The translations under genes and the position numbers were made by a program. The notes beneath the pieces were generated by a model. That model ran no database searches, was not told the origin of the DNA, and saw only the letters and a program-made list of their open reading frames with translations. Of a stretch of 64,000 nt of DNA, positions 29,184 through 64,000 are shown piece by piece (position 1 is the first letter of the stretch; every line of letters starts with the position of its first letter). Where the stretch lies: contig CBFFRP010000012.1 in NCBI GenBank assembly GCA_965644295.1, positions 50,296 to 114,295 on the forward strand, read 5' to 3'. Source of the stretch: Paraphysomonas bandaiensis (Eukaryota > Protista > Chrysophyceae).

Positions 29184-29998
29184 CGCCCCCTCAATGTAAT
29201 AATCAGTGAACCGTAGAAAATAATAGAGAGAATATGAACTTATACACACTGAGAGTAAAAACCAGAGTAGCAGTCACTAGTCAATAATAAGCGAACTGCA
29301 GAGATGCCATATTGTGAGACCATCCTTCTAGTCCAGCATCATGTATTGAATAAAAGAAAAAAATGGTAAAAACTCCGTGTAACTCAAACTAGCCACCTAG
29401 GTCGCTTGTGGCTTGGTAATTGTGATTTAGGTGTCTCTGAGGTTGTTGATCGCTTTCTGTTGCTACTGGATGGGATGTCAAACCCAGCTCCCCCCATCAA
29501 TGTAGTTCGCAATGTGCGGAAGTTATTTGCTCCTAGTGGTTTCGTAAGGAGGTCAGCTAACATTGACTTCTTGTGGATATATGATCCACAGTCAAAATGT
29601 TCTCCGCAATGTGTTCACACGGATGAAGTGGTATCGAATCGCGATATGTTTTGTACGTCAATGATGAGTAGAATTGTAACATATAATTGAACTGCACCTT
29701 TATTATCGCACCAAATAGTTGTTGAGAATGGAAGTATGAAACCAATTTCTAATAATAAAGAGCGTAGCCATAATATGCTTCCTGAGCTGCTGACGATAAA
29801 GCCATATACTCAGCTTCAGTAGATGACAATGCCACAGTTGTCTATAATCGAGATTGCCATGATATAAGACAATTACCTATGAAGAATGTAAAAGCTGTGG
29901 TGAACCGTCGAGTGAGGTGACATCGTGCCCAATCGCTATCGCAGTATCCTGGCAATGTTATGTGGGATCCAGAATATATCAATCCTTGCTTAGCAATG

Positions 29999-30197
29999 CC
30001 AATATGGCTAAGACTCCTGGGAAGAAGAGCGTAAAGGCTCCCGCCAAGAAGGCTGCTGGTAAAGGCCACAAGAAGAGGGTTGAGAGCTATTCTTCTTACG
30101 TGTACAAGGTGCTTAAGCAGGTTCACCCTGAGACTGGTATCTCCAAGAGAGGAATGTCTATTATGAACTCTTTTGTCAACGATATCTTCGAGAGAAT
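29999..30197 (+). pseudogene. H2B: Histone H2B 5' fragment inserted into copia pol
   Basis: 199 bp matching 26675-26873 with one synonymous mismatch (30162); aatgcc duplicated at 29995-30000 and 30195-30200. Confidence 0.95.
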
Positions 30198-33100: not shown

Positions 33101-34147
33101 CCCATTCCGGCTTCTTGATCAAGAACGAAGTTCGTTTCGTCGTTTGTTGGATATCCGACTCCTCCGAAGTCTCGTCCTTTCTGTTGTAGTGGACCACTGT
33201 CTTCATAATCTGCAAACTGGTCGGAGTCGTCGTTTTCAGTGCTCTGGTGGGTCTGGAATATCTAACTTTTTTGAATTTCCTACTGGTTGATTTGTTTCCG
33301 GAGGAATTCTTCATTTATTTGTTGGATCCTTTCCCAGGAGTGTTTGCATTCTGAATCGATGTGTCCTTTTCCATCGCATCGGAAACACTTTATTTTCGGG
33401 AAAAAGGGGGCTTTGAGGTTGCAAGCTGAATACTGTCGGTTTTTGTTTCTTCGTTGCTTGACAAGAGCATTCCAACAGACGAGCTTCCTAATCCGCGTAG
33501 TCTGCGTATCAGTGTTTTGTAGTCAACGATAGGGTGCATCTGCAGGTTGATTGCCAGTTCACGATACGTCATATTTTCTTTGGATACCAGGCCTTGTCGA
33601 ATGCGTGATATAAGATCTTGATCACTTATCCGATGACCATAATTAATCAGCTTGTTTCTGAGCTTTTCGACAGCATTAAGAAAGTTGATTATCGACTGAC
33701 CTTTTTTGATTTTTATGCTCTGGAATTGGCCAATCAGATCGGTGATTACATCGTTAGTCGTTTTTTCCTTGAAGTGGTTCAACAAGTCGGTCCAGGCGGT
33801 TTTACCGTCTCCATCGGGGACGTTCTCCAAAATCCCTTCAGCCTCTTCATTCTGACCTATGATAGAGCTTGCAATGACTGACCATAGGTAGTTATTACCT
33901 TCATCATAATATCGTTTCGCATTCTGATACTGTTCGAGTCGATACTGGTGGTCCTCGTCATCTGAGTTTACTCCTGCTTCAGGCTCAATTGGGTGATCGT
34001 TCTGTAGAGTATAAGCGATAAAACCATGCACGGCACTTCTTCTGCCACCTGGAGAAGTTCTTCGCATCGAATTTTGGCATTGAGTTCTTTCGCTTGTCGG
34101 TTGTCGAATCCGAGTCGGTTGAGTCGTAACTTGTAACTTTAACTGAC

Positions 34148-34159
34148 ATCTCGCTACCA
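34148..34159 (-). other. Primer-binding site, probably initiator tRNA-Met
   Basis: TGGTAGCGAGAT directly after the 5' LTR; TGGTAGC is complementary to the GCUACCA 3' end typical of eukaryotic initiator tRNA. Confidence 0.7.
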
Positions 34160-34425
34160 AATAAAGAATTGATCTTTATAATAGTAAAACAATGTTGTGA
34201 TTATGAGAGTGTAAGTAATGAGCACGATAGAGTGAAAATTATGAATAACAATATAGAACGTAGCTATCATGCATAACGGAATAGTTAGAAGTGTAACTGA
34301 TAATGACGACGTTATGATGACGATCACGTATCTTCGACAGATACTCTCTCTAATTCAGTTCATGGTATATTTCATTGAACATTATAACTCACAGATACAA
34401 TCATGTATTAAGCTGAATCCTAATA
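34159..34425 (-). repeat. 5' LTR of the copia element
   Basis: Direct repeat of 28917-29183. Confidence 0.93.
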
Positions 34426-35384: not shown

Positions 35385-38300
35385 TCAACACTTTGTATAT
35401 ACAGCTGCTACTTCGGCGCTACTAATAATCCCTTCACGCTCCTTTGTCGCTTTCTTTTTCTTCTCCCGACGCTTTGCAAGTCGCTCTCTCGCCTCATACT
35501 CTCCTTCATGCATGCTAACTCTAGTTCTCATTTCGTTTGCATTGAGTCGCTTAACCATGTTCTTCTTGATACCCAGCAACACATCACTATTAGCATACAT
35601 TTCAACAGCCTGTTTTGTGGTTGCTCCCTTAGGTGCTCCCGCTGAGAGATCATGCAATCTAGGGAGATTCTCAGATCGAGCCAGACCTACATAACCCGGA
35701 ACTATTTTCTTCCTGCCAGTTTTATTCTTGATGCGTTCTTCAAGATGACGATGCGCTGATATCTGCCGATATTCTCGAGATGTGTCTCTCATCGCCGTGG
35801 CCATCACAAATCGCTTCTTTACTGCTGCTATACGAGCTCGTTCATTGCCTTCTGCTTTGTCGACCTGCACATATACTTAAGAAAATAAAAATTCACTACC
35901 CTTGAACAATACCTGTTGATGCTCATCACGTTCACTGTGGAGTCGACGGTCTCTAACACGCTGCAGCGTCTTCATCAACTTTGCACGTAATCGAATTGTC
36001 GCATAAATCGTTGTCAAACGGCGATCTGCTGCCTGCGAACGCAAGACATCAACATTCTCATCGTGTTCGCTCCCGGTATCGTCTTCATCACTATCGTCTG
36101 AGATGTCAAAGCGAGTTTTATCATTACAGTCCTCAGTTCGTGCCGCATTCATCCTTTCCAACATTTTCATGCCAAGTAACTCGTGTACTCTTACTTCAGC
36201 AGTGGAACGAATCAGAGACAAGTCAATGGGAACTTCTTTGCTTTGTGTAGCGTAATCCACTGAAACTTTCATTCCATTATCTTCAGAGTTGTGTCTAACG
36301 ACAGCTGGAATTTGCTCGCATGACCCAGGTAGACACTTCCGCGGTATGGGGGCACATAGTACATTAGCTAATTCATTATCTGCATCCTTCCCATCACTGT
36401 TATCACTTGATATCGCGCTGCCTTCCTTGAGTATTCGCGAATTGGAACGAATTGTGGTAAACTCAGAATCGCTATCGTCAATCATGGCGCAGCTCTTTCC
36501 CCCCACTTCTCCACGACTTTCCTCAGAATCTGAGAGCTTCCGTATTGAATCCTGCATTCCTAGTGATTCTAGAATTGTCGCCATTCGCTGATTAGAAACA
36601 TTTACAGCAGTAGCATGTATGCCAGTAGGATAACCGGAATTACCAACATTATCCACCGTTGTACTACCTTCTATACTTTGGTTGTGTTTTTTCTCACCAA
36701 GGTAACGTCGGTACAACATGTTAATAGTCATTCCATTTGATCGTGTCCGGTGAGCTTCTAACTTTTTAAACTCAAGGTTGTGGTAGTACATCAACAATAC
36801 AGGTATGGACAATAGAGTTAGAGCAGCAAAAGCCATTGTTGTCGGCGATGAAAGATATAACAGCATAAAACCAAATGCAATAGGACCACAAATACACCAC
36901 GATAGAGTGTCCATACAAAAAACAGAATTCGCATATGATAATTTTGATAAACAGTGCGCCACATCCACGCAAATACAAATGAACCCCGATAAATACCGTT
37001 GCGCGCATAGACTGTCGGATACGATAAATGAACGAAAACAGTCCGGAGGCACTATAGATCGAAAGTTTGAAATAATTTTGCTTTCGATGCACTCAGGAAA
37101 CAATGCAGCAAGTCGGTGTGACACACATACATATTGATAAGCGTTGAAACTCTCAGTCATTTCAGAGAGTACAGCATCGCCCTCAAGACCACTTTCAACA
37201 TCAGCATCCTGAAAACGTGATAACAATGAAGTATTAAAGTTTCCGATAGCTTTCGTCACCGTTTCACGAGCCGAAACAGCAGAGCTATACACGACATACG
37301 GGACAGCAAAGTGATTCCAATACACATACAGAGTTGATATGAAAAGTGAATCTAAGAAACACCACACAAGGAATGATAGAAGAGAAGCAATCTGAGTGTT
37401 AAAATCCGTTCGAAGCGAATAGAAAACGGCCAAACCGGTGAAAAGGGCACTTGACACAAACAAGTAGAGGCCTGACATTGTCAGCCAAGCATAACTTGCG
37501 ACCGCACCCGTAAGTTCACCCCGTGGGGCTAAGATAATCTCAGCGTGTTTATTGTTTAATTGATCGCGTACGAATGCAGTCAACAACTCACGCCTAATAC
37601 TGTCGCTGTCAAGATGAACAATCCTTTCGGCCATTGCAACATATCTCTCATCGACTGCTTGGAGAAAGTCCCGCAATCGGGAAGCCCACTCGCTTGAGTA
37701 TAATATTACCTCGACGATATCAATATCAGGCTGAATCCCATCAGTGTAATGCAATCCAGTCGCATTTGCGTGATCAATGCCCCACTGTTTCAAAAAAGAA
37801 TCTAAAAGCGACTTGTTATCATATATAGATAAGTAATACTTCGATATAAGTTCAATGAGCCCCTGCCACTCTGCCTCAATATCGATGGGAGATACTTGAG
37901 TTGAGCATCTACATGACGAATCAGCGTCGGTGAGGCCTATTTTTCTTGCCTGGCGAACACCCAGCACGTGACCCATGTTCTCAGTGATACTTTCCAACGG
38001 TTCAGTGACCCCACATAGAAGTGGAGTAGAGAGTCGCGGAGTGGAAATAACACACTTCGGTGTAAAATGCACGACACTCGTCGCTAAGTGTCGTCTCTCG
38101 ATGTAGCTACCATCGTTCCCATCATCAGCACTACCTGGACGTTCAGCAGTCTTGACTTCCACAGAAGTATCAGTAGTCGGGACGTATGGTACAATACTTG
38201 TTACGCGCCTCGTTGTAGGAACCGATTTCGAACATGTATTCGTAACATTTACGCTACTGCTCACGGAAGAAGCAGATATATTGACCTTGCCAGATCTCTC

Positions 38301-41300
38301 ACTGAAAAATTGAATCACTATGCCTAGAAAATGATCCGCAACACATGATACAGGAATGAGTATCAGAGCCACCAGTAAAGATACTGTAAGTATCGCATGT
38401 TCACTGTGAGAAGAATCCCGTGGTACGCATTCGTTTCTAGAGAAACTCCACGAACATAGGTTATCATAAGGTGAGTACGTTGAATCTCGGCGTTCACATA
38501 TAGATGGGTTACTGTAGCCACCACATGATCTTCTCGCTGAAACCCAGACGTCGTACAACAGAGAAATAAAAAATAGTGCCGATAAGTGGCGATACAGAAG
38601 TGCTAGTCTTCGAAAAAGCCTGACATGCTGATACTGCTTACCAACCTGATCACTAACCAGAACTGAAAACCAACGGTGTCTTCGTTGCAACTCAAGCAGA
38701 AATCGTGAATGGAGTGGCTTGTTGTGATACACAACAGGAAATATATTTTCTGCGGTCACAGAACCCTCCCCTAGAGCATTTGCAGTAGCATTACACTTTT
38801 CAGCTGACGACTTCTGGCGCATACACTGTTCCAACGGAGAAACTGAATCACGATCTGTTAATGGTCGCATTTTTTTCCATGATTCACTCGCCTTATGATG
38901 ATCCAGATACTCGTATCCAAACGGAATAACTCCAAAACAAATCAAAACAAAACCCACAGTGATTGCAATGGTCCACGAATTCATGCTTCCATCACCAATA
39001 TCACTTCTGGCAGGAGATACCCATGATACTTGTACTTGGGATTTTGATTGAACAACCGTGACCCCAATTGACACTGAGAAAATACTACTTGGAGAAATTG
39101 TATCCACAACGGAGCAAGAACAACTTGTCATGCCTGGTGTAGTTGAATGTGCATTTAATGCAGTAGTGCAGTCCGCAGCATTGAAGATATCACCAGTTAT
39201 TAAGCCGCACACAGTTTTCATCACAGTTGATGGACACAACACATTCCATACGCCTAGAGACGAATTACACATCACCGTTACAGACACGGATTGCGGGCAC
39301 ATGAGTTGTACAGGGACATCAATATCTGACTTACGACAATAATGTGTCACACGATGGTGTGACGCATTTTTTACACGCACAACATGGGGAATTGTAGCAC
39401 TATATACACCACTGAAACTTACAAAGGACCCATTCCTATCATACTTGGATGCCACAAATGTGATGACGTTGGATATTAATGAGTTTCCCCACTTTAACTC
39501 CTTATACAATTCTAAACCAGTTAATACTGCACAGTGTTCAATAGCACTTTGTTTCTCATACTCATGGGGATTAAGAGTGGCAACATTGCTCAAAATATAT
39601 GGTGTGTCATTTGGTATATGAATAACAGTCTGATTATCTAAGACGGATACTTGACCTACCAGCTGAAATACACGGCCTACGTATTCCACAGGCAACTGAT
39701 TCTCAACCATACCAGTCATGTACTTCGTACATACATTATGTACTATAGTACTAATATTCATAATGACTTGCAGTCGCTGGTGGGGAAGTACTTCTTCTAA
39801 ATCAGAATAAGCTGCCCACTGGAAAACACTATCCACAATTTCCATTACCTGATGAAAAGAACCTTCACTCCAAGAATCTGAAAAGTTTTGTAGAAACAGT
39901 TTAAGAAAAGTGGTGGAACACTCGGCGCTATTGAGAGTTATTAACATTGGACGGGACACTATATTTTTCATCGCAGAAATCATAGACACCACATCATACA
40001 ATGTCCAAGCATCTTCACTGTGCAAAGAATTTCGCAATGCGCAACCCAGTTGCTCTAATCCTACGCGTCTTGTTGATATACCTTCCAATGTTTCGCTACA
40101 CGTTTCTCCAAAATATCCTTCTCCACACTTACAGACAGCCACACATGAATTGTCAAAAGAAAAACATTCCGATGCTATCTCCCATGAAGCAGTTTGTCGA
40201 AAAATACACACACCGTTCCCACTGCAGTGTGAAGGGCATTGTTTTTTGGGGGGTTCACAGATACCCAAACGACTACAATTCGAAAAATTCCCGCAGTCTT
40301 CGTCGGTGGAACAGCTAGACATGTCAGATGAATCAAACACCGGAACGCAAGGTTGGTTGGAATATGATTCTCCGAGAAGAACTTCGCTGGTTGAGGTGAC
40401 ACACGGACCACATGTATTTTCCAGCACAGAACACTCTTCTCTGAGGAGCGCACTACAATTTGGAGAGGCCGTGCAATTCGCCGCCGACAGTGACACAGAG
40501 AGTGAAGAAATTAATCCAATGTCACTTATATGCATATTGTTTATGATTTCAGAAGAAACAGCGATTAAGTCATCAAAACTATGAGGTGTGACTGTGACAG
40601 TAGTGAAAAGGAGACTTGCAGCATCAAATATATCGATAGATCTGACTCCTGCGACTGTCCTATGCGCCACGGCAGTTGATTCACGGGGCAAACGTGCACT
40701 CACATAAGTGCTGGGTGATACAGAATTCACACCAAGAAAAGACCCTCTGGAAAATATACCAAACTGATATGTTAAGGGGAGGTCACTATCGATCCAGAAT
40801 GATGTTGAAAACAGGAAGCTATCTGTCAATTCATCTCCAACGTGGGGTGTGATGACAATCGAGCCAGCACTTGGTGGGTTATTGACTTTTATCTCCATCG
40901 ACACGAAGTTATCGCTCTTATTGCACGAGGAAAGTGGTTGGTCGGAAAAAAATAGAGTGAAGATATAAGAACCACTCCCACCGACGAGATACATACTGCG
41001 AAGCACTAAGTTGGTGGATACAGGAACATTAAGTGGAAGTTGATATCGAGGCACAGTCAAGGTAATATCGCTCAAAGCATGTGTATCATCACCGTCCCAC
41101 ATCGCATACTTATAGCTCGCAGTTGTCACCGTCTCTAAAGCAAAGCTTCCGCTGTAAGGTTGAAACAGCAGTGTCGGACTTCGTAGAACCACATTATGAA
41201 TATCCTTATCATCCGTTACATGTATAACCATTTCTGCATCATCTTTTCTGAGCCGAGTTGAGTCCATAGCCGTCATGGTAACCACGAACGTTGTGCCCAC

Positions 41301-44300
41301 AGTAGCATTGTTCGTGTCCACAATTGCCATTCCTGCAGAAGAGAGGACTGAAAACATACTTCCACAACCGGGGTTGGGAAAATCTCCAGGGTCATAGCGC
41401 ACACATCTCCAATCGTATATCAGACAACTAGGAGAAGTTGCACAATTCGGATTGTCATCATCATAGCTACCGGAGCCATCAATTATAAGTCTACTTCTGG
41501 CTGGTAGGCTCCGCTCGGAACCGCCGGACAGAACAGCTTCGACAAATGACTGTTGTACATTAACGATGCATGAATAAAAATTAGACCCGAGAGAGATATT
41601 GAAGAGGCTATTAACTTCCAAACGAATCTCATATACTCTGTGAGTCTCTAACACCCATCCCGGAAGGTAAAATTTGCGTGGTAAAGAAGAGTGTGACACA
41701 ATTGAAGTATCAGGATAATCACTATCATCTACATACACACTCCATGTGAAGGATGGCATAAACCTCTCTTCGAAGTCAACGACGCTTGGATAAAGACAAT
41801 TATCGATGGCCAGTCGTGCCCAGAGGGTGAGGGGTTTATTGGTGGTCATATACCGATATGGTGGTCCAACAACACTGACACCCACGGTACAAGTAGGATC
41901 TACACGCACTGCTGCTTCGCGAGTAGAGCACACCCCAAGGAAATTGCACAGAGTAACAGTAATGGTGTATATCCGCCCTGAAGTTAGTGTATTCTCTGGA
42001 AGGGGAGTTGGTGGAGAAACTTCATACGTCGATGCATAAAAGTTATTCACATACGTGATGTCCTCAGTGGTATCAGAAGACTGAAGTGATATCGTAACCG
42101 TGGACCACGATCGCCCTCCAGACCCTGTGGAAGCGGTCAGGTCTAAAACAAACGGCATACATTTATTGATCACTACTGGAGCAGATACCGATATAACAGG
42201 AGGAACCAAAAGCTCAGCATCAACTGTCGTGATATTCAGTGTTACTTTAGCAGCAGCAGGGTAGTTTTCGCAATGTGCTCTGGTGCACTTTGGAAATATA
42301 ACACCTTCACGAAGAACTGCCTTATCGCCAGGTACTACCACAGAGTTCGAATCCAATACTATAGCTAACGCAACATCTGATTTAAAAAAACATGACTCGT
42401 GCCCACCGGGTATATATACCACCTCATTACAAGCAAATGATGTCGATCCTTTGGATGCCTTATTAGTCCGTTTGTCAAATGTAAGCACTATTTCTACGCC
42501 ATCACCACTAAACCGTGCAGATGATAATATGGGTACCGGTGGTACTGAAGATGGAGATATCGCTGATACTGTGCTTTCAACTTCATACAACGCAGTGTAC
42601 TCCTCTCTAGATGGGCCGTCAAGGGAGATATTAAACCCATATGATCCTGATGATAGTGCAGCAAAATATACAGTCGTTTCAAGTGAAAAGTCACCCTTAT
42701 AGGACGGTGCATACGTAATTTCTGGAGGATAGAGCAGGTAATCAGTCACCTGAAGTGTTCTGAATGCATTCACATAACTCGTATCTACAGGGAATACAGA
42801 TATCTGGATAGTCATATTACTCGTCGGTTGAGAATCAAGAGTAACCGTCATCACGGGCACAGGGGTTGAACTCTGAGAATTGATTACTGATGAAATAATA
42901 CCCACATATAGTGACCGACAGCAAGGCATCGTTACTTGTCTTTTAGTAGCCACAATGTTTTCTTGTCGCATTTGCAAGCCGTCGCTACTAAAAGAAACAC
43001 AATAAATGTTATATGTAGTGCCGGGAGACAATGACTGGACAAGCATATTTGCCGTGTAATTTCTTATCACACTATATACACCACGCTGTCGTATGAGACG
43101 GGCATAAGCATCCACAGATAGACCTAATGCCGCGCAGTACATATACCCATCTGGACTTGAAAGAACAACCGAGACGTGAATTGAAGATAATGAGGGAAAT
43201 GTTAACTGTAGATCGAGTATAGCAGGTGCGTAATCGTGTTGTATTTGCAAAGACGGTTGGTTGGTATCAGCAGATGGAATTGCAGTAGTTCTACATGTTG
43301 GGAAAAGTGATGGAATACCTTCTGGAAATACAGTGGAATATATTGAGGGCATGCAACTTGGAAAACTACTGGGCACAGAGCTTGGAATTATAGTTGGCTT
43401 AGAAGTAGGGTCGGAGGAGGGAATATAACTAGGAACAGCTGTTGGCAACTCTGATGGTATTTCAGACGGAGACGACGTCGGTAGCACAGACGGCACACAT
43501 GATGGCATACAACTTGGAAAACTACTGGGCACAGAGCTTGGAATTATAGTTGGCTTAGAAGTAGGGTCGGAGGAGGGAATATAACTAGGAACAGTTGATG
43601 GCAACTCTGATGGTATTTCAGACGGAGACGACGTCGGTAGCACAGACGGCACACATGATGGCATACAACTTGGAAAACTACTGGGCACAGAGCTTGGAAT
43701 TATAGTTGGCTTAGAAGTAGGGTCGGAGGAGGGAGTATAACTAGGAACAGCTGTTGGCAACTCTGATGGTATTTCAGACGGAGACGACGTCGGTAGCACA
43801 GACGGCACACATGATGGCATACAACTTGGAAAACTACTGGGCACAGAGCTTGGAATTATAGTTGGCTTAGAAGTAGGGTCGGAGGAGGGAGTATAACTAG
43901 GAACAGCTGTTGGCAACTCTGATGGTATTTCAGACGGAGACGACGTCGGTAGCACAGACGGCACACATGATGGCATACAACTTGGAAAACTACTGGGCAC
44001 AGAGCTTGGAATTATAGTTGGCTTAGAAGTAGGGTCGGAGGAGGGAGTATAACTAGGAACAGCTGTTGGCAACTCTGATGGTATTTCAGACGGAGACGAC
44101 GTCGGTAGCACAGACGGCACACATGATGGCATACAACTTGGAAAACTACTGGGCACAGAGCTTGGAATTATAGTTGGCTTAGAAGTAGGGTCGGAGGAGG
44201 GAGTATAACTAGGAACAGTTGTTGGCAACTCTGATGGTATTTCAGACGGAGACGACGTCGGTAGCACAGATGGCCCACAAGACGGACTAGTACTTGGTGA

Positions 44301-44546
44301 ATTAGTAGGTAGTCCTGACGGAAACTCTGTCGGCAGCAAGCTTGGCCACTCTGATGGGGATCCACTAGGACAACATGTAGGTGTTGATGTGGGGTCGCTA
44401 GTTGACATGACAGGAAAATCATCTCCTTGCTGTGGGAAGTCGTCGTAGTATACGTAGTCATCATCACCTTGCTGTTGAGCCGAAACCCATTTAACCCTTG
44501 AACATCGCATAACAAATAGAAGCCGCAGAATTACAAGGACAGACAT
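35385..44546 (-). CDS. Giant polycystin-1/REJ-like membrane protein with a PT-repeat stalk and EGF-like domains (about 3000 aa, 2 exons)
   Basis: Signal-like N-terminus, P(S/T)xx repeats, REJ-type motifs (IDGSGSYDDD, NNPPSAGS...DSDLPLTYQF), Cys-rich/EGF region (CSGNGVC...CKCGEGYFGETC), multiple C-terminal TM segments. A 48-bp GT-AG intron (35865-35912) joins ORF 35385..35870 in frame. Confidence 0.8.
43345..44275 (-). repeat. Coding tandem repeat, 6 x 156 bp (52 aa)
   Basis: gacgacgtcggtagcac recurs at 43471, 43627, 43783, 43939, 44095 and 44251. Confidence 0.95.
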
Positions 44547-45207
44547 CAAAAATCAGAGTAAATGTTCGGAACGTTAAGCAAGAACCGAAGCCTGTTATCT
44601 GTCGAACACTTCAGGAATATATCACATAAAACTGTAAAATATCGAATGATTAGTTATCTAAGTTCAATATTCCACAATCCGTCCACAGTGAACCTCGACG
44701 CAATAAATCTCGAGCACGCGTGATAGTCATCTGCCTTGTATTGATTGTCGCATATTCCAGTTCCAGTTTGTGCCGCAGAGTTTGAACACAGCAGTAGCAA
44801 TTCCTACCGCGATATACCGTTGATATACGGTGGTACAATGGGGAGGGATTTTTGGTTCTGGAAAAGTGTAAAATGGAAACCGAAAACAAGACTTTTCGTA
44901 CGGGGAAGTCGAGGGGCACACCACCAAAACTGAAAAACCGTTTTCAACAGGCCTAGTCTTATGTTCATACCGCACGTACTGCTGTGTACGCTGGTAGAGT
45001 TAAATTAGATGTGGTGTAGTGGTAAACGTAATCTCCTTATAACGAGGGAGTCTGGCGTCATGATCAGTCTATTGCTCACATCATATTACAAGACTATGAA
45101 TTGTGATGTAGTTTTGAGAAGCGTGGAAATCGTACTAACACTTTACGTGTAATTTACAAAACTATAAATATTTCTTTGATTTTTATCTACCCCAGCCGCT
45201 ATTTGGT

Positions 45208-48200
45208 ATGTCGACGAAACGCAAGGCGCCGAACATGAATTCACACCAACTCGGTGTAATGGGTGTATCGCAGATGAATATGCCCGTGAGATCGCAGTCT
45301 ATGATTGGTATGCAAGACGATATTGACATAGAGAGAGGGTGGTGGATTGCGTTCATTGGAGGAAATGGCTATATTGATTTTAGTCTCGTTAAGAAGCATT
45401 TAATATCGATGAAATATAATTCACCTATTGGGGCGTATTGGGATATACTTCAAGTAATTTTGTCATTGCTTGCTTGTGCAATATATGTCGCAGAGAGTTA
45501 TCGCGACTCGTACCGATCACTCCAGATCTACACGATAATAGAGAATATCATAACACAATTTTTTCTCATGGATTTCCTGGTCAGCTGGTTTGTTGCTGGC
45601 TCTAATATTGCTTTTTTCAAATCCCCTATGGCGTGGATCGATATGGTGACTATAATTCCAGTGTATATAACATACATTCGACAGGCGCCGAGTATATCCT
45701 GGCTAAGATTTGCAAGAATTCTCCGCCTGATAAGAATATTGAGAACTTTTCGCCTACTTGGTGGCTTCAGCGGTGTGAAACGACAAATCATTACCCTTGT
45801 GCTTGCCTTGTTGAGCTTGACATTCCTTGCTGCTGGAATAATCAACTTGACTGAAAATGACGTCAACGAGTTAAGTTATGACTGCCAGTACATAAGTGAG
45901 AAGACAAACTATGAACCCTCTTGTGACCCGGACTTCTCGTCTTTCAATGACCCAACCTGCGACTGCCGAGAGAACAATTGTTATGCCCTCCACGATGTAC
46001 AGGACACGCAATACAAGCCTTCCAAAATTCGCTGTCGGTCATTAGCATTTTTTGAAAGCCTCTACTTTGTGGTAGTGACGATATCAGTTGTAGGATATGG
46101 CGACTTTATGCCAACTAATGATGCTTCTAGAGTGGCGACTGTGGTGCTTATTGTAACCACCCTTATAGTAATCCCTATGCAAATTAATAAACTCCAGACT
46201 CTCCTTGCCATGAATTCGCCTTTCAGGACAACATACGAAGCCCGTCCTCACGAGAACCATCTGATTATTTGTGGACATGTGAACGATAAGTCGAAGCTCT
46301 CGCGCGTGTTTCGTGAGTTCTTTCATCCTGATAGGTACGCAGCAAATACTCCGGAGTTTCACCTGGTCATCTTGAGTCCCACAGAGCCAACAGACGAGGT
46401 GAAAGACCTAATTCATTCTCCTCTGTTCGACAGTCGTGTCTCGTATATCATTGGCTCTGCACTGAATATGGAAGACCTTCAAAAGGCCCGAGCAGACATA
46501 GCCTCAGGTATGCTCTTCTTGAGCAACGAGGAGGTTGATGAGGAGGACGCTCTGTTAGATGACGCTGCCACTGTGTTACGAACGCTTTCTGTGAACAACT
46601 TCAATTCCAGACTGGAATGTCTTGTACAAGTTTTGCGGTCCCAGGACCGAGATTTACTGAAAGACAGTGATGCAGATTTAGTTCTGTGCTTGGATGAATA
46701 TAAAACTACATTGCAGTGTAGAAATGCGATCTGTCCAGGCTTGGCAACTCTTGTAGAGAATATTTTTCACAGCTTCTCTTCTACGAGTGGTAAGTATGGG
46801 GCCCAAAAAGTTGGTGATAACTGGATTTCCGAATATACGTATGGTGTTGGTATGGAGCTTTATTACGTTCCCATAGATGATGGGTTCTTTTCTATGATGG
46901 GATATTCCTGGGCGCTTTTAGTTGAGGCGATATATCTGGAGTTTGAGTGTACATTTGTTGGAGTGCTCTGTCCTGAAGATCATAGCTTTTTCTACAACCC
47001 AAGGCAGTATGAGAGGAAGAAATTTCGCACTCCACGGGCGTTTTTTGAGAAGTATAATGTTGGAATTCTACTTGCTCCGAACAACGCCGTCGCAAGTGCT
47101 ATTGGCTACGCTATGACTGACACAGTACTTATGGATCGAATGCTCACCAACATGGTGACAGCAGAAGGTCATTTTGCAGTGAGAAGACATTCCACATGCA
47201 CCCCACATGGCTCGAATCGGACATCATTTTTCAGTAATCATTTGAAAGGTATATTATTCTTAGGAAAAGCCCAGGGCTTAATTGATAATGATTTTGCTGC
47301 CGTTCGAAAGCGTGACACTGTGATTAGCCAGACTGAGAACAATACTGTCTCTGGATTCGATACCGATTCTTCCGAAGAAAACGATGATGACTTTATTGGT
47401 TATGTTGATCATGATCACGAGAATGAGCGGTCATCTCGTCGGCGAAAGGCAGTAGCTATCGCCTTCCCCAGTAAAGACTCTTCGAAAGCTGACGCCTCTC
47501 GGAAATATGATGTGTCAAAGAAATTTTCTGACTGGGAGGCAGATTCACACACTAGTTCTCCTATCAGTCCTATGGCATCTGACTGCGTTTCTCCGGACAG
47601 GGGACATTCACCTATAGATCAAAACACAACCGAATGCGATCTTGATGCAGCAGCTGATGCTATTGTTAAGGTCAACAATGAGACCCTTGAACTATTAGAT
47701 GATGGCAACTCTCCCCAATTAAGGGATATGCGAGATTTGAATGTGTCGAAGAAAGCAATACTGCAAATGAAGTCCTCTACCGGGAAGATGACTAATATGA
47801 AGAGCATGAAAAATATGATGATTAAGAAAAACAAACTGAAATCCCTGAAGCAGGCCGCATCGTTGGTTCGCACTGTGAACGCTCAGAAAGCACAGAGTGG
47901 AGGAAGTCATGGCAATGCCAAGACGAAGTTTGCCTCCCTTGCACGCAGAGCGGCCCTCCAGAACTCTGGTACTGCTTTCGATGCGGCTGTCGTAGCGGCG
48001 GCGACGAAGCCCGCCAGTATCGTGGCAGCCCTACAACAAACTCGTATAAACTCCATGTCGCGACGAAAAGGGAAAAGAAATATAAAAGATGTTGCTATGA
48101 TGGCAAGAATGGTAGGATCCAAAGGCGAGGCTGGTATCAGTCCTTCTCCAACAAGAGGAACTACAACACCTGTAGAGGTAGTAGCCACTGAGGATGCTTC

Positions 48201-50248
48201 TCAAGTAGATCTGGCACAAAATCCCAGCATTGCTTGTCTAGTATCGAAGTTTCAGGCGAAAAAGGAAGAAAAAAGGAAGCTACGACGAGTGCTGTCCACT
48301 CGCACGAGTAGCATTCACGAGGATGACAAATCTTCAGATGACATCAAGAAATCTTGCAGCAGGAGAGCCTTTGGACGAAGTGAATCTGGAGCTGGGGAGC
48401 TTATTCAGAGTACAGCAGCACAGTCGTCACTTCCGACTCCATCACAAGGCATCATGAGTCGAAGACGAAGGGGATCTGTTGACGCGGCGCTTCCTAATAT
48501 TGGGACAGATGATACTTTTAAGGAAGGAAGCCTGCAGAAGTTTGGACAACAGTCGGAAGAGATTGATGATGCGGCTAATCTCAAAGGCCATGTCATTGTA
48601 TTCGGCTGTATGGACCATATATTATTATTTGTCAGTGAGTTGAGAAAGCAGCTAGTGGTCGACGAAGCTTACCACCAAATCCTTATCGTGAATCCTGGAG
48701 AGCCGAGGAAATGGCGTCAGATTCAGAGTCGATACGATGACGTCTTTTTCTTGGATAGCAACGTATCCTCGAATCAAGAGTTGACACTGATGAATGTGCG
48801 GGCTGCATATGCCCTCGTTTTGCTAGCTTCAAGAGAGCGAATTAATGTGGATGAAACCTCTAATGTTGATTCAGATGCCATATTTATGTACCTTAAAATG
48901 GAAAGGTTTGTTCCTCGTGACGTTTTTTTTACGGTGGAGCTCGCTTGCCCTAATAACATGGGTGTGCTAAATTCTGCGATAGTAAGGAGAAGTAGACTTG
49001 AGCGCGATGCTAATAGTCGAGGTCCTATATGGGGAGATGGTGGGACTGGCCTCGCCTCATGTCTGAAAGGTAACCACAAGTTTCGAAACAGCATTGACGT
49101 GGACGTTTTATTGGGCCATATGAAGACTGAAGTAGCTTATGACAATCACAATGCGAATATTCAGGCAACCAGTGGAAAGTTTAGTAGGCGTAGACAGGGC
49201 ACTGCAGTCCAGCGAAACTCGCCAGACGTACCTTTTGACCCGACCGGCCGGAAGCTGAAGATATCCTCAGTGCCCACGTATACTCCTGCAGTGACAAGCA
49301 CGAAAAAGAAAGAGCAAAAAAAGGTGAGATATATCCCACCTCTGCGATTATTGGTTCTCAATATGGTATATTATAAGATCCAAACTGGGAACTACTGGGA
49401 TGTGGACGACTCACATCATGTACTTCCCGTCTTTGCTGCAGGAAGGGCGATTGTGCCATCGTCGTTCGATACGATGTTGTGTCAGGTACTGAGTTTTGGT
49501 AATGTTGATGAATATTTGCTAACTATTATTGTAATATCGCAGAGCTTTTTTGGGGTTTTGACTCCCCAACTTTGCGAGAAACTAGTTTGTGGTCAAGAAA
49601 TGCAAATGTTGTTCCACATTGCTGTACCTAATACATTTTTTGGAAGAAAATATGGTGACCTCTTTCGGTCATTGAACTCTAGATCTGTAAGTGTATGCTG
49701 CCCCGAATGTGTGGTGTGTAGTTTGACTTGTCTCGCAGCTCCTACCCCTTGCACTGTACAGGACCCCTTTACCACGGAATGATGCCATACTTCCTTATGT
49801 TTTTACCAATCCACCCATCGACACAATTGTAAATGGTGATGATCGCATACTTGTGTTCGGTAATCCAGAGACCGTCCAAAATGCAATCAAACAACTGGAA
49901 CTTCCTTTGGTGAGACGGAACGGTAAAATGTCGCTCGGCGAAGAGACCACTTTTGATGTGAGATCTTTGAGAAAGAGTTCCATTACATCACCGTCGAGTG
50001 CATACACTCCGCTCGGAGCCAGAAAGAGATCGACTGAGGGTTCGACAAGGTTGACTGCAGAGCCGGCCCAGCCGTCGCCCTCGCCCAAACCACGAGAAGG
50101 TAGTAGCTATGTTCCTCTTGGCGCTGCTCGTGTTCATCCTACCAATCCTTGGACAGCGGCTGTTCCAAGCGTTCTAAAAAAAAAATCGAAGGTGGCTGGT
50201 ACTATGGATTTCCCTCAACCGTCCTCCTTTAGAGATGATATTACATAA
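45208..50248 (+). CDS. BK/Slo-like voltage- and Ca2+-gated K+ channel with two RCK domains (3 short introns near the 3' end)
   Basis: S4 LRFARILRLIRILR, pore SVVGYGD, RCK1 HLIICG, RCK2 GHVIVFG, PVFAAG. Splicing at about 49324, 49486 and 49687 gives LALYR...YVFTNPP and joins the 49853..50248 ORF. Confidence 0.9.
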
Positions 50249-58216: not shown

Positions 58217-60432
58217 ATGATTGTCGTCCCATTCCAACGACTTCCGCGTAAATCATATGACCCACGGGAAGATATCCCTCGAGTTGATATCGAGTACCTG
58301 CAGGACTACGAGTCTGAAACATATTCAAGTTCGAATGAATCAGAGCGCTCATTTATGTTTTCTGATGGATCGAGTGATTCAGAGGAGTCTTATGGATCCC
58401 CACAAACCGGAGAGTACAGTTCGTTTATCTCTGAAAATATGTCTGCGGATTCATATGATGAGGAAGCTGATATTGTTGAGGAGCCGATGAATGAATCATC
58501 CAAAATTACAGGTAGCGTACACAGTGTGCGGTCTCAAAAACGAAAGAAGCACGGCTTTTTAAAGCGCCTCAAAATGTTCATTCGAAGAAGAAAATCATAC
58601 GTTAGATTTCAAAATTGGCGTAAGCGAAAGGCCGAAGAGAGGCGGCACTTTATGATACGGATGTATGAAGCAAAAGCTGAAGATGAGTATCATAGAGCAA
58701 GAGAAGAAATCCTTAATAAAATTCGAGAAGATGAAATGTGAGTAGTAGATCATACACAGAGTGTAACCCATCGTGTAGTTGTGTATATTTGTATTTCTTT
58801 TTGGAATAGTGGTGGTGCTCTATTGATAGTGATACTTTAGGTTGGTTTTGAAGACCGCAAAGCGCCTTAGGAAAGTTCAAAAGACACTTGTCATTCGGGT
58901 ATAGCTTCCCTGCTTTAATTATTTATGCTAGTGATGTGCATGAAATCTCTGGACTAATGCTACGGGTCTGTATTCTCATCGGAATGTGTATAGAACAATG
59001 CAAGTTTTGTCAAAGATCATAAGTTTGAGCATGAAAAGGTCGTTCGCAAGAAAGAAATGGATCGCCTTGAATTCAATGTTCTATACTTTCAGGTATTGGT
59101 AAAGTAGTGTTGAGTAGTAAATTTAATCTAACTGAATGCTACTTCTTACCATCAAGAAATGGGCATTGGAAAACTTCCATCGGCACAATGAAGAAGCCGA
59201 GGCGAAAAGGATCGAAGATATAGCTGCTGAGAACAAGCGCTTGAAACAGCTCCAAGCAAGGAAGAAAGAAGAGTTTGGCCTAGACGACGAGAGCAAACTT
59301 CAGGCGGATATTGCGGAGACCCAATCTTTACATCGTATGGCGAGGAAACATGGTACACGAGTTGGCGTGAACGCCATATGTCATCAGGTTATTCCAGAGC
59401 CGCTGGTGGAAACTACACGGAAGCTTTTCCTGCGACTAAGAGATGATGTAGATTTTAGCTGGAAACCAAAGCATATGCGTACTCGAGACCAATTGATGCC
59501 GTTCACTGTGGATTTGCGTTCTTATCGTGATGTAGAGACGTTGGTGGCAGTAAATATTGGGGAGATTGGATGTTTAGCTTTGAGTGCGGAGTTTGTACGG
59601 GGTTCGTGCTCGAATGTGGTTGAGCTGGACATGAGCAGGTACTTCTAGCGTTGCTTTGATGTGTCCTCACACACATTGACATGCTCTGAAAGTTTACGCT
59701 TAATGTGAATTGTCATCACGTAGCATAAGTCTTTTCGTTTGATAGTACTCCTGTCTCATTGTAGTTTGTGTTTCTCTGTAGATGTCAGATTCACAGTCGT
59801 GGGTTTGGACGTTTACTTCATGGACTTAGAATTGGTAGAGTAATGAACCTCCGAACCCTCAAGGTCAGAGGGAACGCTCTCTGTCCTTCGGCTTTAGATT
59901 TTCTTAGAGTTGGTGAGTGTTGTTCCAATCAATGGATATTCAATTGGTATTTGTGTGTCATTTTATATCCGTTGTACTGAGACATTATGCAATCAATATA
60001 TTTACTATGGATAGCATACTGTACGAGTTATGAATATGCTGCTATAAAATATTTTCTACTACTCAGTATCCTTTGTAGCACTAGGAAACGGGTCTCTTCC
60101 TAATTTGCGCACATTAGACCTGCGAGAAAATGAACTCGGAGATATTGGTGCGGATAAGATTTCTCACATGATGATGGATGATTTGTTCATTTCTATTTCC
60201 GTTTTATATTTACAAAGGTAGGTATTTGACTTGTGAGGTATATGACTTGTGATATTGCTTTCTGCGTAGGAATGGAATTGGAAATAAAGGTGTCAAGAAA
60301 CTTGTGAATATGCTTCGAGCAATCAAAGATGTGCATTGCCCAAAGCTGTCAAATATTAATATAGAGGAAAATCTGGCCACCGCTGCTGTTAAGCGGGATC
60401 TCCGGCCTCTTCCACCTGGAGTAAGTTTGTAG
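58217..60432 (+). CDS. Coiled-coil plus RNI-like leucine-rich repeat protein, multi-exon
   Basis: Acidic then charged N-terminus; LRRs NIGEIGCLALS, LRTLKVRGNAL, LRTLDLRENELGDIG, NGIGNKG; stop at 60430-60432. Confidence 0.75.
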
Positions 60433-60512
60433 ATTAGAACTATGTGTGAGAGTTTTCATAATTGTATGTTGCACTTTTTAAATAACATTTAACTTGCGTT
60501 CGAATAGTTGTT

Positions 60513-60628
60513 GGTTAGGGTTAGGGTTAGGGTTAGGGTTGGTTAGGGTTAGGGTTATAAGCTGTCCCCCGATAGCTCCTTACCCATTTGAGGTGTGGAT
60601 CTTAGGGTTAGGGTTAGGGTTAGGGTTA
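60513..60628 (+). repeat. Two TTAGGG arrays (60513-60557, 60602-60628) flanking a 44-bp truncated copy of the telomeric element
   Basis: Directly visible; the spacer differs from later copies at 2 positions. Confidence 0.95.
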
Positions 60629-61192
60629 TACGCTGTCCCCCGATCGCTCCTTACCCATTTGAGGTGTGGATCTGTTTAACAATCAAATTTAAGCCAATCA
60701 AAAAAAGTAAGTTTACCATCGCGCATTATTCTTGATATAGAATACATAGAATACAGTGAATACGGCTCTGTGAGCGTTTTGAGCTCATAACTTATGAGAA
60801 TAATTTTTTTAGGCAAAGGTCGTATTTTATTACTAGAGTAATGTGGGTATTCTGCGTTTACTGATATATTTTTTAATTTTTATTACCCCGTAGTTCCAGA
60901 GATATTATTTTTATGGGGTGCGGTTAAGGTTAGATAGAGGTGTGAGCTCCTAACTTTTTATAAAAAGCTTTATAGGTGAAGGTCATAGGTTTTTACAAGA
61001 ATAATATGGGTACGCTGAATTTACTGATATGTTTACTTTTTTTTAACTCGTCATAGTTCTTGAGATATCATATACCCTACCCTAACCTTAGCCCCAACCC
61101 TAACCCCAGCGAAAACCCAAAGAATATCAGAAGCATCACAATTCAAAGTATGTCAATTTTTGACTTACAAACACTTCATTTTTGACTTCATT

Positions 61193-61660
61193 TATATATA
61201 ACATATATATAACATATACACACTTCATAGTAAGTCAATATATACTTCATATATACACATATATACCTATATATAACATATATAACATACACACTTCATA
61301 GTAAGCGAATTTATACTTCATATATACACATATATACCTATATATAACATATATAACATATACACTTCATAGTAAGCGAATTTACACTTCATATATACAC
61401 ATATATACCTATATATAACATATATAACATACACACTTCATAGTAAGCGAATTTATACTTCATATATACACATATATACCTATATATAACATATATAACA
61501 TACACACTTCATAGTAAGTCAATATATACTTCATATATACACATATATACCTATATATAACATATATAACATACACACTTCATAGTAAGCGAATTTATAC
61601 TTCATATATACACATATATAACATACACACTTCATAGAAGTCAATATATACTTCATATAT
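61193..61660. repeat. 71-bp AT-rich minisatellite, about 6.5 units (second copy at about 63198-63665)
   Basis: ttcatagtaag at 61224, 61295, 61366, 61437, 61508 and 61579, then a 52-bp partial unit. Confidence 0.93.
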
Positions 61661-61754
61661 ACAACAGCTGTTTTTTTGAAAGCAAATGTAATAAGTTTAG
61701 GAGTATTATTATTATTTAAAGAAAACACATGTGAACAGACTACTAGGACTAGGA

Positions 61755-62483
61755 CTACCCGTCGTGTGCACGGTTTCGAGTTTTGATCCGAGTTTTCCGG
61801 TTACGCAATTTATATTTCTTGCCGGTGTTATCGGGAGGAGGAGGCCTAGGGCGTTTATGGGAGCGGCGACATGGATCTGGTGCGTTTTCTACGTCGAGGC
61901 GCCGTTCATTTAATTCTCTTTCCTCATAGAAACCGTAATTGTTGGTCCAGTGTGTCTTCCAGCCGGGTCCAAAGTTTTTGGTATTACATTGTTTTGGTAT
62001 GTAATCCATCCGCGAGGTGCGTCGGCTACGTGGGGTATTCGAATATAACAGCCATCCAGTCTGCCACTGGTTTTTCAGGCTGCGGGGGGTATCGACCATC
62101 CACTCAGCGAAGGCCATATACTCCGTCTTTGCAATGTGTGGATAATCGGGCATGTCAGGGTATTCTGAAGTACGAAGGAGGATTATCTGACAGTTGTAGA
62201 GGGCCTCAGTATCTTCGGCTGCTTCGTTAAAGTATGATGCTGGCCAGCAATTTGGCTCATCAGGTAGTAGGCATGGGTTACCATCCATTGGAACGCCATT
62301 GACACCAAGAAGATACGCAGCACTACGTTTGCGACTTGGGTTTCGCGATATGGTTGTCCACTGCGTGGCATCTACTTGCTGACCACCCATCGGTATTAGC
62401 AATCCCTTACGAGGATTGTACAGTTCGATGAACTTTCCTAACTCTGCGGATTCAGATATTCTGATATTAGGCCATTGCCACAC
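61755..62483 (-). CDS. 5'-truncated ORF, divergent SET-domain-like protein with a basic C-terminal tail
   Basis: 242 codons, GC-richer than its flanks. Order of motifs IRISES..G, KGLLIPMGG, YLL...DGNP, ASYFNE...NC, F....D, LLY parallels the SET fold. No ATG upstream; the frame runs into the telomere repeats. Confidence 0.5.
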   Translation of the reverse strand: MWQWPNIRISESAELGKFIELYNPRKGLLIPMGGQQVDATQWTTISRNPSRKRSAAYLLGVNGVPMDGNPCLLPDEPNCWPASYFNEAAEDTEALYNCQIILLRTSEYPDMPDYPHIAKTEYMAFAEWMVDTPRSLKNQWQTGWLLYSNTPRSRRTSRMDYIPKQCNTKNFGPGWKTHWTNNYGFYEERELNERRLDVENAPDPCRRSHKRPRPPPPDNTGKKYKLRNRKTRIKTRNRAHDG

Positions 62484-62491
62484 TCCGTCAA

Positions 62492-62633
62492 TTAGGGTTA
62501 GGGTTAGGGTTAGGGTTATACGCTGTCCCCCGATCGCTCCTTACCCATTTGAGGTGTGGATCTGTTTAGGGTTAGGGTTAGGGTTAGGGTTAGGGTTAGG
62601 GTTAGGGTTAGGGTTAGGTTAGGGTTAGGGTTA
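62492..62633 (+). repeat. Two TTAGGG arrays (62492-62518, 62566-62633) flanking a 47-bp truncated copy of the element
   Basis: Directly visible. Confidence 0.95.
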
Positions 62634-63979
62634 TACGCTGTCCCCCGATCGCTCCTTACCCATTTGAGGTGTGGATCTGTTTAACAATCAAATTTAAGCC
62701 AATCAAAAAAAGTAAGTTTACCATCGCGCATTATTCTTGATATAGAATACATAGAATACAGTGAATACGGCTCTGTGAGCGTTTTGAGCTCATAACTTAT
62801 GAGAATAATTTTTTTAGGCAAAGGTCGTATTTTATTACTAGAGTAATGTGGGTATTCTGCGTTTACTGATATATTTTTTAATTTTTATTACCCCGTAGTT
62901 CCAGAGATATTATTTTTATGGGGTGCGGTTAAGGTTAGATAGAGGTGTGAGCTCCTAACTTTTTATAAAAAGCTTTATAGGTGAAGGTCATAGGTTTTTA
63001 CAAGAATAATATGGGTACGCTGAATTTACTGATATGTTTACTTTTTTTTAACTCGTCATAGTTCTTGAGATATCATATACCCTACCCTAACCTTAGCCCC
63101 AACCCTAACCCCAGCGAAAACCCAAAGAATATCAGAAGCATCACAATTCAAAGTATGTCAATTTTTGACTTACAAACACTTCATTTTTGACTTCATTTAT
63201 ATATAACATATATATAACATATACACACTTCATAGTAAGTCAATATATACTTCATATATACACATATATACCTATATATAACATATATAACATACACACT
63301 TCATAGTAAGCGAATTTATACTTCATATATACACATATATACCTATATATAACATATATAACATATACACTTCATAGTAAGCGAATTTACACTTCATATA
63401 TACACATATATACCTATATATAACATATATAACATACACACTTCATAGTAAGCGAATTTATACTTCATATATACACATATATACCTATATATAACATATA
63501 TAACATACACACTTCATAGTAAGTCAATATATACTTCATATATACACATATATACCTATATATAACATATATAACATACACACTTCATAGTAAGCGAATT
63601 TATACTTCATATATACACATATATAACATACACACTTCATAGAAGTCAATATATACTTCATATATACAACAGCTGTTTTTTTGAAAGCAAATGTAATAAG
63701 TTTAGGAGTATTATTATTATTTAAAGAAAACACATGTGAACAGACTACTAGGACTAGGACTACCCGTCGTGTGCACGGTTTCGAGTTTTGATCCGAGTTT
63801 TCCGGTTACGCAATTTATATTTCTTGCCGGTGTTATCGGGAGGAGGAGGCCTAGGGCGTTTATGGGAGCGGCGACATGGATCTGGTGCGTTTTCTACGTC
63901 GAGGCGCCGTTCATTTAATTCTCTTTCCTCATAGAAACCGTAATTGTTGGTCCAGTGTGTCTTCCAGCCGGGTCCAAAG
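62634..63979 (-). mobile_element. Telomere-associated element, long copy 2 (diverges from copy 1 after 63979)
   Basis: Identical by eye to 60629-61974; the last 21 bases of the window are unrelated to copy 1. Confidence 0.8.
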
Positions 63980-64000
63980 CGGTACAGCACGCCTGGCAGG

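Follow-up and report, generated by a model that had tools for sequence, protein, structure and literature searches.

The window, by which we mean the whole 64,000-nucleotide stretch of DNA that was analysed, ends in four co-oriented copies of one unit embedded in telomeric repeats, at what is probably the chromosome end of a Paraphysomonas-like chrysophyte. This array was very probably produced by repeated extension of the chromosome end combined with healing by telomerase. The unit carries a divergent SET-domain gene whose nearest relatives lie inside the LTRs of Ty3/gypsy elements. Our preferred reading, held tentatively and at somewhat below even probability, is that a gypsy-LTR segment was captured behind a 44-47 bp telomeric module and multiplied through DNA-templated copying of the kind seen in MoTeR arrays.

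Results

Telomeric repeats began about 80 bp past the point where the last host gene appears to end, with a proximal tract of 47 nt that contains variant repeats (60511-60557, + strand). Copy 1 (60558-60601) consists of the 44-bp terminal module alone and shares a 1-nt microhomology with the following tract (60602-60628, + strand, 27 nt, 4.5 repeats). Copy 2 (60629-62491), the longest at 1863 bp, comprises the module, an AT-rich body, a variable tandem repeat (VNTR) and the SET ORF. It is capped by a telomeric tract of 27 nt (62492-62518, + strand) at a microhomology of about 2 nt, as judged from the codons of homologs. Copy 3 (62519-62565) is a 47-bp module identical to that of copy 2, with a 3-nt microhomology to the next tract (62566-62633, + strand, 68 nt, one variant repeat). 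Copy 4 (62634-63979) is 100% identical to copy 2, VNTR unit order included, and contains the 3' part alone of the SET ORF (63760-63979, - strand). It is joined to a 21-nt tail (63980-64000) that is non-telomeric and unrelated to the element. Candidate origins of this tail are a nested insertion, a template switch, end-joining or an internal deletion; an intron was ruled out, as the switch point has no acceptor.

All four copies were found to start at a common base after a tract ending in GGGTTA and to share a single orientation, with a fixed inner end and the 3' end of the ORF facing inward. These features agree with the first-pass annotation of this DNA, as do the fresh telomeric repeats that re-cap copies 1-3 (tracts at 60602, 62492 and 62566) and the lengths of 44, 1863 and 47 bp. 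The length of "at least 1346 bp" given there for copy 4 was corrected: this copy is exactly 1346 bp long and is followed by the unrelated bases of the tail.

The G-rich strand of the array is directed toward the window end. Copy 1 differs from copies 2-4 by two substitutions; divergence is thus seen in the innermost tract and copy, which would fit an array whose inner members are the older ones. Elsewhere in the 64-kb window there were no tandem telomeric hexamers and just two isolated hexamers, and no element pieces were found in the first 60.5 kb, indicating that the array is not a product of chance. A single block duplication of a short plus a long copy was ruled out, since the tracts differ in length (27 and 68 nt) and the short copies differ in sequence, copy 1 being diverged.

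The outer ends of the four copies fall at just three distinct points. Copies 1 and 3 end within 3 nt of each other, both at a GC-to-AT change beside a TG. Copy 2 ends within a few nt of the codon at which the LTRs of two gypsy relatives (L003 and L015) turn from identical to divergent, a coincidence that was noticed post hoc and has a probability of about 1-2% by chance. The copy ends look like preferred structural boundaries and not like a random ladder. In M. oryzae, 19 of 24 de novo telomeres were seeded at 1-4 nt, and erosion followed by healing also leaves the inner end constant while the outer ends vary (PMC7367193). Such a pattern is therefore not diagnostic of reverse transcription.

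The terminal module (60629-60675 in copy 2) is GC-richer than the sequence behind it, with 57% GC in the first 44 nt and 28% in the following 1.08 kb; the change point (p ~0.03) has an imprecise boundary, placed at 22-46. TG dinucleotides occur at element positions 45 and 6 and not at position 1, and the TG at position 45, or else that at position 6, is a candidate LTR start. Folding of the module was not better than that of shuffles (z -0.8 to 0.6). Farther out lie an old, degenerate internal duplication (60780-61071; 60780-60908 vs 60943-61071, 73% identity), its two units separated by a short G-rich telomere-like motif, and a degenerate telomere-like tract (61073-61111, - strand) in the orientation opposite to the capping tracts. 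The VNTR is a 71-bp tandem repeat of six copies and a partial unit (61193-61663; 63198-63668 in copy 4). DNA-transposon terminal inverted repeats were sought in the unit and not found. Neither a reverse transcriptase nor a helicase was found in the visible 1863 bp of the longest copy, in which the only substantial ORF is SET-like.

The SET-domain ORF (61755-62491, - strand) has a complete C-terminus and contains no stops or frameshifts. It is cut at about codon 23 of homologs of about 265 aa, and only about 22 N-terminal codons are missing. Searches of Pfam, PHROGs and, with the single sequence, the PDB gave no matches, and a Pfam SET match was obtained for 0 of 24 family members; the SET assignment therefore derives from the family profile and the predicted fold. 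A family profile search matched the ORF to NSD2/ASH1L (E 0.002-0.015). The AlphaFold model reached a pLDDT of 83, and the best 50 PDB matches in Foldseek were all SET folds, MLL1/NSD/SETD8 among them; the best viral matches (E 7e-4) were phaeovirus SET domains (Feldmannia virus, EsV-1-28). Profile, model and structural matches agree on a predicted divergent SET domain, histone-methyltransferase-like, in keeping with the earlier observation that the 3'-most ORF is not a reverse transcriptase.

Tyr147 (numbered on the 242-aa query; window position 62045) is conserved in at least 90% of the 24 members and, from its position, is probably the catalytic Tyr after the knot motif. The site that by position would correspond to the Asn-His cofactor-binding motif reads Asn-Glu, with the Glu likewise kept in at least 90% of the 24. 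Like MLL1/NSD/SETD8 and the phaeovirus SET domains, the ORF has the SET fold and a Tyr conserved where the catalytic residue is expected; it differs from them in its 9-16% identity, in Asn-Glu for Asn-His and in a basic C-terminal tail. Codon-position identity between the window gene and its relatives was about 0.63/0.70/0.33, and on sequence grounds the gene appears to be intact and selected. A full-length homolog, P0001, is transcribed in Paraphysomonas. Runs SRR6342619, SRR6342629 and SRR6342630 contain sequences with 99.9% identity to this genome, and the host appears to be a strain in culture for which transcriptomes are public. The protein may have an enzymatic role, for example chromatin marking that favors the parent element.

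In a tree of the family, the window ORF grouped with a Paraphysomonas transcript (support 99/98) and with three further SET genes, L001, L003 and L015 (support 100/99). Window-clade SET genes of known context lie antisense inside a Ty3/gypsy LTR. In L003 and L015 the gene is upstream of gag and of a pol with RT, RNase H and integrase, and L001 has the same 29-37 bp LTR end as these two, next to a polypurine tract. The 3' end of the SET gene faces the left end of the LTR in these relatives and the fixed end in the window. The window gene is 47-52% identical to the gypsy-borne genes, which are 51-71% identical among themselves. L003 and L015 share about 100% identity over gag-pol and SET codons 1-23 and 68-81% from codon 24 onward. 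The SET gene appears to pass from one gypsy variant to another as a cassette.

Several observations count against an LTR origin of the window unit. The LTR terminus of 29-37 bp, 100% conserved among the gypsy relatives, gave only chance-level matches in the window, although the window SET gene is about as close to theirs as theirs are to one another. In the window the ORF lies 1126 bp from the element end, compared to 145-395 bp for the relatives. The array shows no visible gag, pol, PBS or TSD, and every copy in it stops in the SET gene or before it. The gypsy relatives, for their part, contain no telomeric repeats.

More distant SET family members adjoin genes of Polinton-like viruses or of probable tyrosine-recombinase elements. 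The family thus recurs as mobile cargo of several carriers, and the class of a carrier cannot be read from the presence of the SET gene. The non-LTR-like element at L007 was ruled out as a SET carrier, its duplicated 3' end stopping at 9994, just before the gene. JGI metagenome and IMG/VR scans yielded no close relatives among the candidates listed (at least 600 in one scan), and the 17-22 nt matches from junction-motif scans of the same collections all failed to extend, as chance matches do. Scans of viral contigs found no relative of the window unit.

Discussion

The alternation of tracts and copies supports the earlier proposal that rounds of extension and telomerase capping alternate at the chromosome end. 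The array would have been built outward in such rounds. In each, the G-strand end would prime inside the telomeric tract that precedes a donor copy and be extended with a copy of the unit; the new end would then be lost or stop short, and telomerase would re-cap it at seeds of 1-3 nt. The unit itself would be composite: behind the 44-47 bp telomere-adjacent module would lie the left part (U3) of a Ty3/gypsy LTR, with the antisense SET gene inside it. The module may be the 3' tip of a retroelement that targets telomeres, comparable to MoTeR relics. Copying would be DNA-templated, whether by break-induced replication, D-loop or gene conversion, with the same or another telomere as donor. MoTeR arrays grow by break-induced replication and D-loops, with truncated ends healed, and the gypsy element MAGGY inserts into them, which provides a precedent for capture of a gypsy element in a telomeric array (PMC7367193). 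Recombination builds much of both MoTeR and FoTeR arrays (PMC7367193, PMC12857005). Against this reading, the presence within 3.5 kb of four truncated copies, of which two are tiny, is typical of what target-primed reverse transcription yields. We give DNA-templated copying of an LTR-derived unit a slight preference over telomere-primed reverse transcription, with neither reaching an even chance.

The main alternative, possible and in our judgment the less probable of the two, is a continuous non-autonomous retroelement, MoTeR2-like or Coprina/Terminon-like, that captured a SET gene and used a reverse transcriptase supplied in trans; it corresponds to the model of the first-pass annotation. 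Its minus-strand RNA would end in telomere-complementary repeats and anneal to, or be primed at, the telomere, and the 5'-truncated cDNAs would be capped by telomerase. Polarity, the constant junction phase, head-to-tail order, tiny copies and a long 3' UTR all fit telomeric retroelements. The window tracts of 4.5-11 repeats can be set beside the 3-7 repeats at FoTeR 3' ends (PMC12857005), MoTeR2 retains a 77-bp 3' end with unrelated sequence in place of the RT (PMC7367193), and Terminons gather co-oriented extra ORFs (PMC5537684). The transcription of P0001 is also consistent with such an element, as are the remnants in L007, which resemble RLE-type non-LTR elements (RVT_1 match; class assigned by eye). 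However, the visible 1.86 kb holds no RT, and no hammerhead was detected on either strand by Rfam search to E=10 or by a core-motif scan allowing one mismatch. The nearest SET relatives are LTR-borne, and the end points are not scattered but concentrated at what appear to be structural boundaries. Given the same absences and the gypsy location of the SET relatives, the RNA-templated or Penelope-like extension considered in the first-pass annotation stands as a hypothesis.

It is unlikely that a SET-carrying Ty3/gypsy element was captured at chromosome ends and had U3-length copies written onto telomeres, for instance with the overhang as primer, before telomerase capped them. A related reading is very unlikely, namely that telomeric repeats are the direct target of an active gypsy element, either through its integrase or by the telomeric 3' overhang replacing its polypurine-tract primer, each copy being a separate capture. 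The polypurine tract of L015 does end in a hexamer one base from GGGTTA, and copy 2 ends at a putative U3/R boundary; yet the telomeric tract and the nearest TG are 5 or 44 non-telomeric bases apart, the window lacks the conserved LTR end, and the literature search found no precedent. We attach an equally low likelihood to a linear DNA element, of the Polinton-like virus or tyrosine-recombinase type, whose terminus became attached to the telomere through end-joining or recombination and afterwards underwent erosion and healing. In L008-L011 a SET family member is found close to a gene for a D5 primase-helicase and is directed into tandem repeats located at the contig end, an order resembling SET, VNTR and fixed end in the window, but these homologs are distant (~30% identity) and outside the window clade, no viral gene is visible, and the viral contig scans point the same way. 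Least likely is a partial assembly artefact of collapsed or concatenated telomeric haplotypes, notably copy 4 with its tail: the identity of copies 2 and 4 and the unexplained tail would fit, but the units differ in the lengths of their tracts and in the sequences of their short copies, seed microhomology is present at the caps, and the ORF is free of indels.

The architecture of the array is of an already known kind. Arrays of elements embedded in telomeres are known from fungi, rotifers, insects and some few protists; our literature search, which was word-based and misses subscription papers, found none for chrysophytes, and neither SET cargo nor a probable LTR origin. The SET family, missed by Pfam, turns up repeatedly as a passenger gene in gypsy LTRs, in a Polinton-like virus and in probable tyrosine-recombinase elements. 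If active, its protein is a candidate element-encoded chromatin modifier that might serve to counter silencing. An LTR origin of the telomeric unit, if correct, represents a route for an LTR element into telomere turnover, and if gypsy capture is true, the result would be an LTR-derived telomere-extending element bringing its own chromatin modifier.

Yeast Y' elements are subtelomeric units flanked by telomeric tracts, spread by recombination, that encode a helicase and fall into defined size classes. The window array is similar in its subtelomeric units, their telomeric flanks and a possible recombinational spread; it differs in having no helicase ORF in the visible part, an inward-facing SET gene and heavy outer truncation. 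The unnamed Ty3/gypsy family (L001-L004, L015, L016) shares one SET clade (100/99) with the window and a gene facing the element end, and copy 2 is cut at that family's cassette boundary. Unlike that family, the window lacks the 29-37 bp LTR terminus and has a far longer spacer with a VNTR.

Athena, Coprina and Terminons resemble the window unit in carrying telomeric repeats at the 3', inner end and 5' truncation toward the chromosome end (PMC5537684, PMC8557442), a polarity that holds here if the ORF strand is the sense strand of the element. Hammerheads mark the repeats of telomeric EN-minus Penelope-like elements in protists (PMC4209133, PMC8557442), whereas the visible unit has no hammerhead, Penelope-like RT or pLTR.

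The closest architectural match, absent from the first-pass annotation, is to the arrays of MoTeR1/MoTeR2 in Magnaporthe oryzae and FoTeR in Fusarium oxysporum, which are CRE/SLACS-like RLE non-LTR elements. These too form head-to-tail copies within telomeric repeats, with short tracts between them, a fixed inner end and outer ends that were truncated and then healed at seeds of 1-4 nt, and they include an RT-less non-autonomous member, VNTRs, arrays reshaped by break-induced replication and gypsy insertions (PMC7367193, PMC12857005). The window differs in its chrysophyte host, in the absence from its visible part of an RT and REL endonuclease, which a MoTeR2-type partner would lack anyway, and in its cargo, an intact SET ORF related to gypsy-LTR genes. 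The likeness is one of architecture.

Anatomy of the terminal array

Four telomeric tracts (60511-60557, 60602-60628, 62492-62518 and 62566-62633) were found in the terminal 3.5 kb of the window, lying between co-oriented pieces of one unit. The first-pass annotation had described four copies with a common start base, and this was borne out: every copy starts directly after a tract ending GGGTTA. The lengths given for copies 1 to 3 (44, 1863 and 47 bp) also held. Copy 4, described as at least 1346 bp, instead ends at 1346 bp, with a switch at 63980; the 21 bases at 63980-64000 are joined to it inside the SET-domain ORF and showed no relation to copy 2, the rest of the window or the fetched loci. 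Over 1346 bp copies 2 and 4 showed 100% identity, with the variants of a 71-bp VNTR in the same order, while copy 3 repeated the start of copy 2 and copy 1 carried two substitutions. The other 60.5 kb of the window contained neither tandem telomeric repeats nor any piece of the unit. The G-rich telomeric strand points toward the end of the window, and the first tract begins ~80 bp past an apparent host-gene stop at 60430-60432; the window end is therefore very probably a chromosome end lacking a long subtelomere. This last host gene (59136-60432), leucine-rich-repeat-like by eye, has a consensus splice-donor sequence at 60421 and was possibly cut within an intron when the chromosome end formed.

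The SET ORF and its relatives

The minus-strand SET ORF of copy 2 (61755-62491) was open throughout, with neither stop nor frameshift and a complete C-terminus, and was short of only ~22 N-terminal residues compared with homologs of 264-268 aa. Codon-position identities to relatives of 0.63/0.71/0.32 and 0.64/0.67/0.35 show purifying selection. None of 24 family members was matched by any Pfam family, and the family profile matched NSD2 and ASH1L weakly (E 0.002-0.015). The predicted structure was confident (pLDDT 83), and SET domains filled the entire top-50 of a fold search against the PDB (best E 8.5e-4). The best viral matches were phaeovirus proteins, one annotated as SET. A Tyr is conserved at the expected catalytic position, but Asn-Glu replaces the usual Asn-His motif, which makes the protein no more than a candidate methyltransferase.

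The tree took in homologs P0001-P0023, with P0005 swapped for its cluster mate P0026 and the short fragments P0024 and P0025 excluded. The window protein was sister to P0001, a Paraphysomonas transcript product (64% identity, support 99/98), within a five-member clade (100/99).

A Ty3/gypsy family carries an antisense SET gene (L003:4881-5823 and L015:4871-5827; also contigs L001, L002, L004 and L016). In L003 and L015 this gene lies upstream of both a gag-like ORF and a pol whose domains (RT, RNase H and integrase) follow the gypsy order. L001, L003 and L015 have a 29-37 bp end in common, starting with TG when read on the gag strand and preceded in L015 by a polypurine tract, so the SET gene lies inside the LTR. 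L003 and L015 were about 100% identical across gag-pol and SET codons 1-23, but identity dropped to 68-81% (a difference of ~30%) from codon 24 up to the conserved 37-bp LTR end. By this pattern of identity the divergent stretch reads as a swapped cassette, and its edge is plausibly the U3/R boundary. All of these contigs represent one family and so amount to one or two independent observations. The L015 SET copy is interrupted after 161 codons. Just beyond the LTR, a second gag-like ORF in opposite orientation (L003:5878-6546) suggests a nested insertion.

The wider SET family missed by Pfam (P0001-P0025; L007-L014, L017-L020, L030 and L047) occurred in varied contexts, some without assignment. 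Some distant homologs lie in a contig of Polinton-like or giant-virus type; there the SET gene adjoins a D5 primase-helicase and points into a terminal tandem repeat. Others adjoin ORFs judged by eye to be probable tyrosine recombinases, for which database searches gave zero matches. Together with the gypsy LTRs, these contexts show that the family is mobile-element cargo. L007, a probable chrysophyte contig, also holds several remnants (6202-9994 and 16081-19498) classed by eye as like RLE-type (CRE-like) non-LTR retrotransposons, a lineage that might be an RT source for telomeric elements.

Other genes and elements in the window

An intronless BK-type potassium channel ORF (45208-49782) was 89% identical to a Paraphysomonas protein (MMETSP1103) over residues 60-600 and ~77% over its length. 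Another window protein had an exact match in an MMETSP data set; the window sequence itself was matched at 99.9% by three public runs. These matches mark the host as a Paraphysomonas-like chrysophyte. Adjoining the channel is an intronless 2890-aa minus-strand ORF (35877-44549) with a REJ domain, an EGF-like region and six 156-bp tandem repeats. A degenerate copia-like LTR element (28917-34425) has 267-bp LTRs (99% identical), gag and SH3-like matches, and RT-like pieces in opposite orientation (30211-31069); an ORF within it (29917-30288) reads by eye as the N-terminal half of histone H2B.

Proposed capping and growth of the array

Microhomology between cap and repeat was 1 nt for copy 1, 3 nt for copy 3 and, inferred from homolog codons, about 2 nt for copy 2. 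In Magnaporthe, 1-4 nt seeds were present at 19 of 24 new telomeres (PMC7367193). Variants sit in the most proximal tract and copy, which fits sequential, outward addition. Extension plus telomerase healing is very likely how the array was built.

Our preferred reading, held tentatively, is that a gypsy U3 segment would have been captured next to a short telomeric module, and the unit copied onto the chromosome end from a DNA template, with priming in the telomeric tract; the new end would then be trimmed and re-capped. MoTeR arrays offer precedent for each step: gypsy elements insert into them, they grow by BIR and D-loop, and they are truncated, healed and joined to foreign sequence (PMC7367193). 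Copy 2 is cut only a few bases from the cassette boundary of L003/L015, a coincidence noticed after the fact with a chance of roughly 1-2%. Both short copies stop near a change from 57% to 28% GC (change-point p about 0.03, its position being imprecise), adjoining TG. The junction at element position 45-50 has three readings, each of which fits the sequence: a single continuous element healed at a seed; a 44-bp module with an LTR starting with TG behind it; or a 47-bp module and a second element with half a telomeric repeat between them, an arrangement permitted in MoTeR arrays (PMC7367193). The main evidence against U3 capture is that the conserved LTR end of the SET-carrying gypsy family is absent from the window, and for this reason the array cannot be assigned to that family.

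A close rival, possible if somewhat doubtful, is the first-pass model, in which copies of a non-autonomous retroelement are added by reverse transcription primed at the telomere. It agrees with the polarity, the junction phase, the tiny copies and the lengths of the tracts, but neither RT nor hammerhead is present in the window part of the unit. The two models are compatible, as the module may represent the tip of a retroelement of this kind. It is improbable that the unit is the end of a linear DNA element, and just as improbable that gypsy targeted the end directly or was telomere-primed at its polypurine tract; there is only a slight chance that the array is partly artefact. These probabilities are judgements and were not computed.

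Comparison with known telomeric elements

Word-based literature searches found no chrysophyte telomeric array, SET cargo, SET-in-LTR gypsy family or cassette swap of that family, which is weak evidence of novelty; the gypsy family is possibly more novel than the telomeric array. No hammerhead was found and any RT gene of the unit would lie beyond its visible part, so the array cannot be filed with MoTeR/FoTeR or with the EN-minus PLEs. Its way of working is nevertheless like that of the arrays of these elements, and its architecture is of an already known kind.
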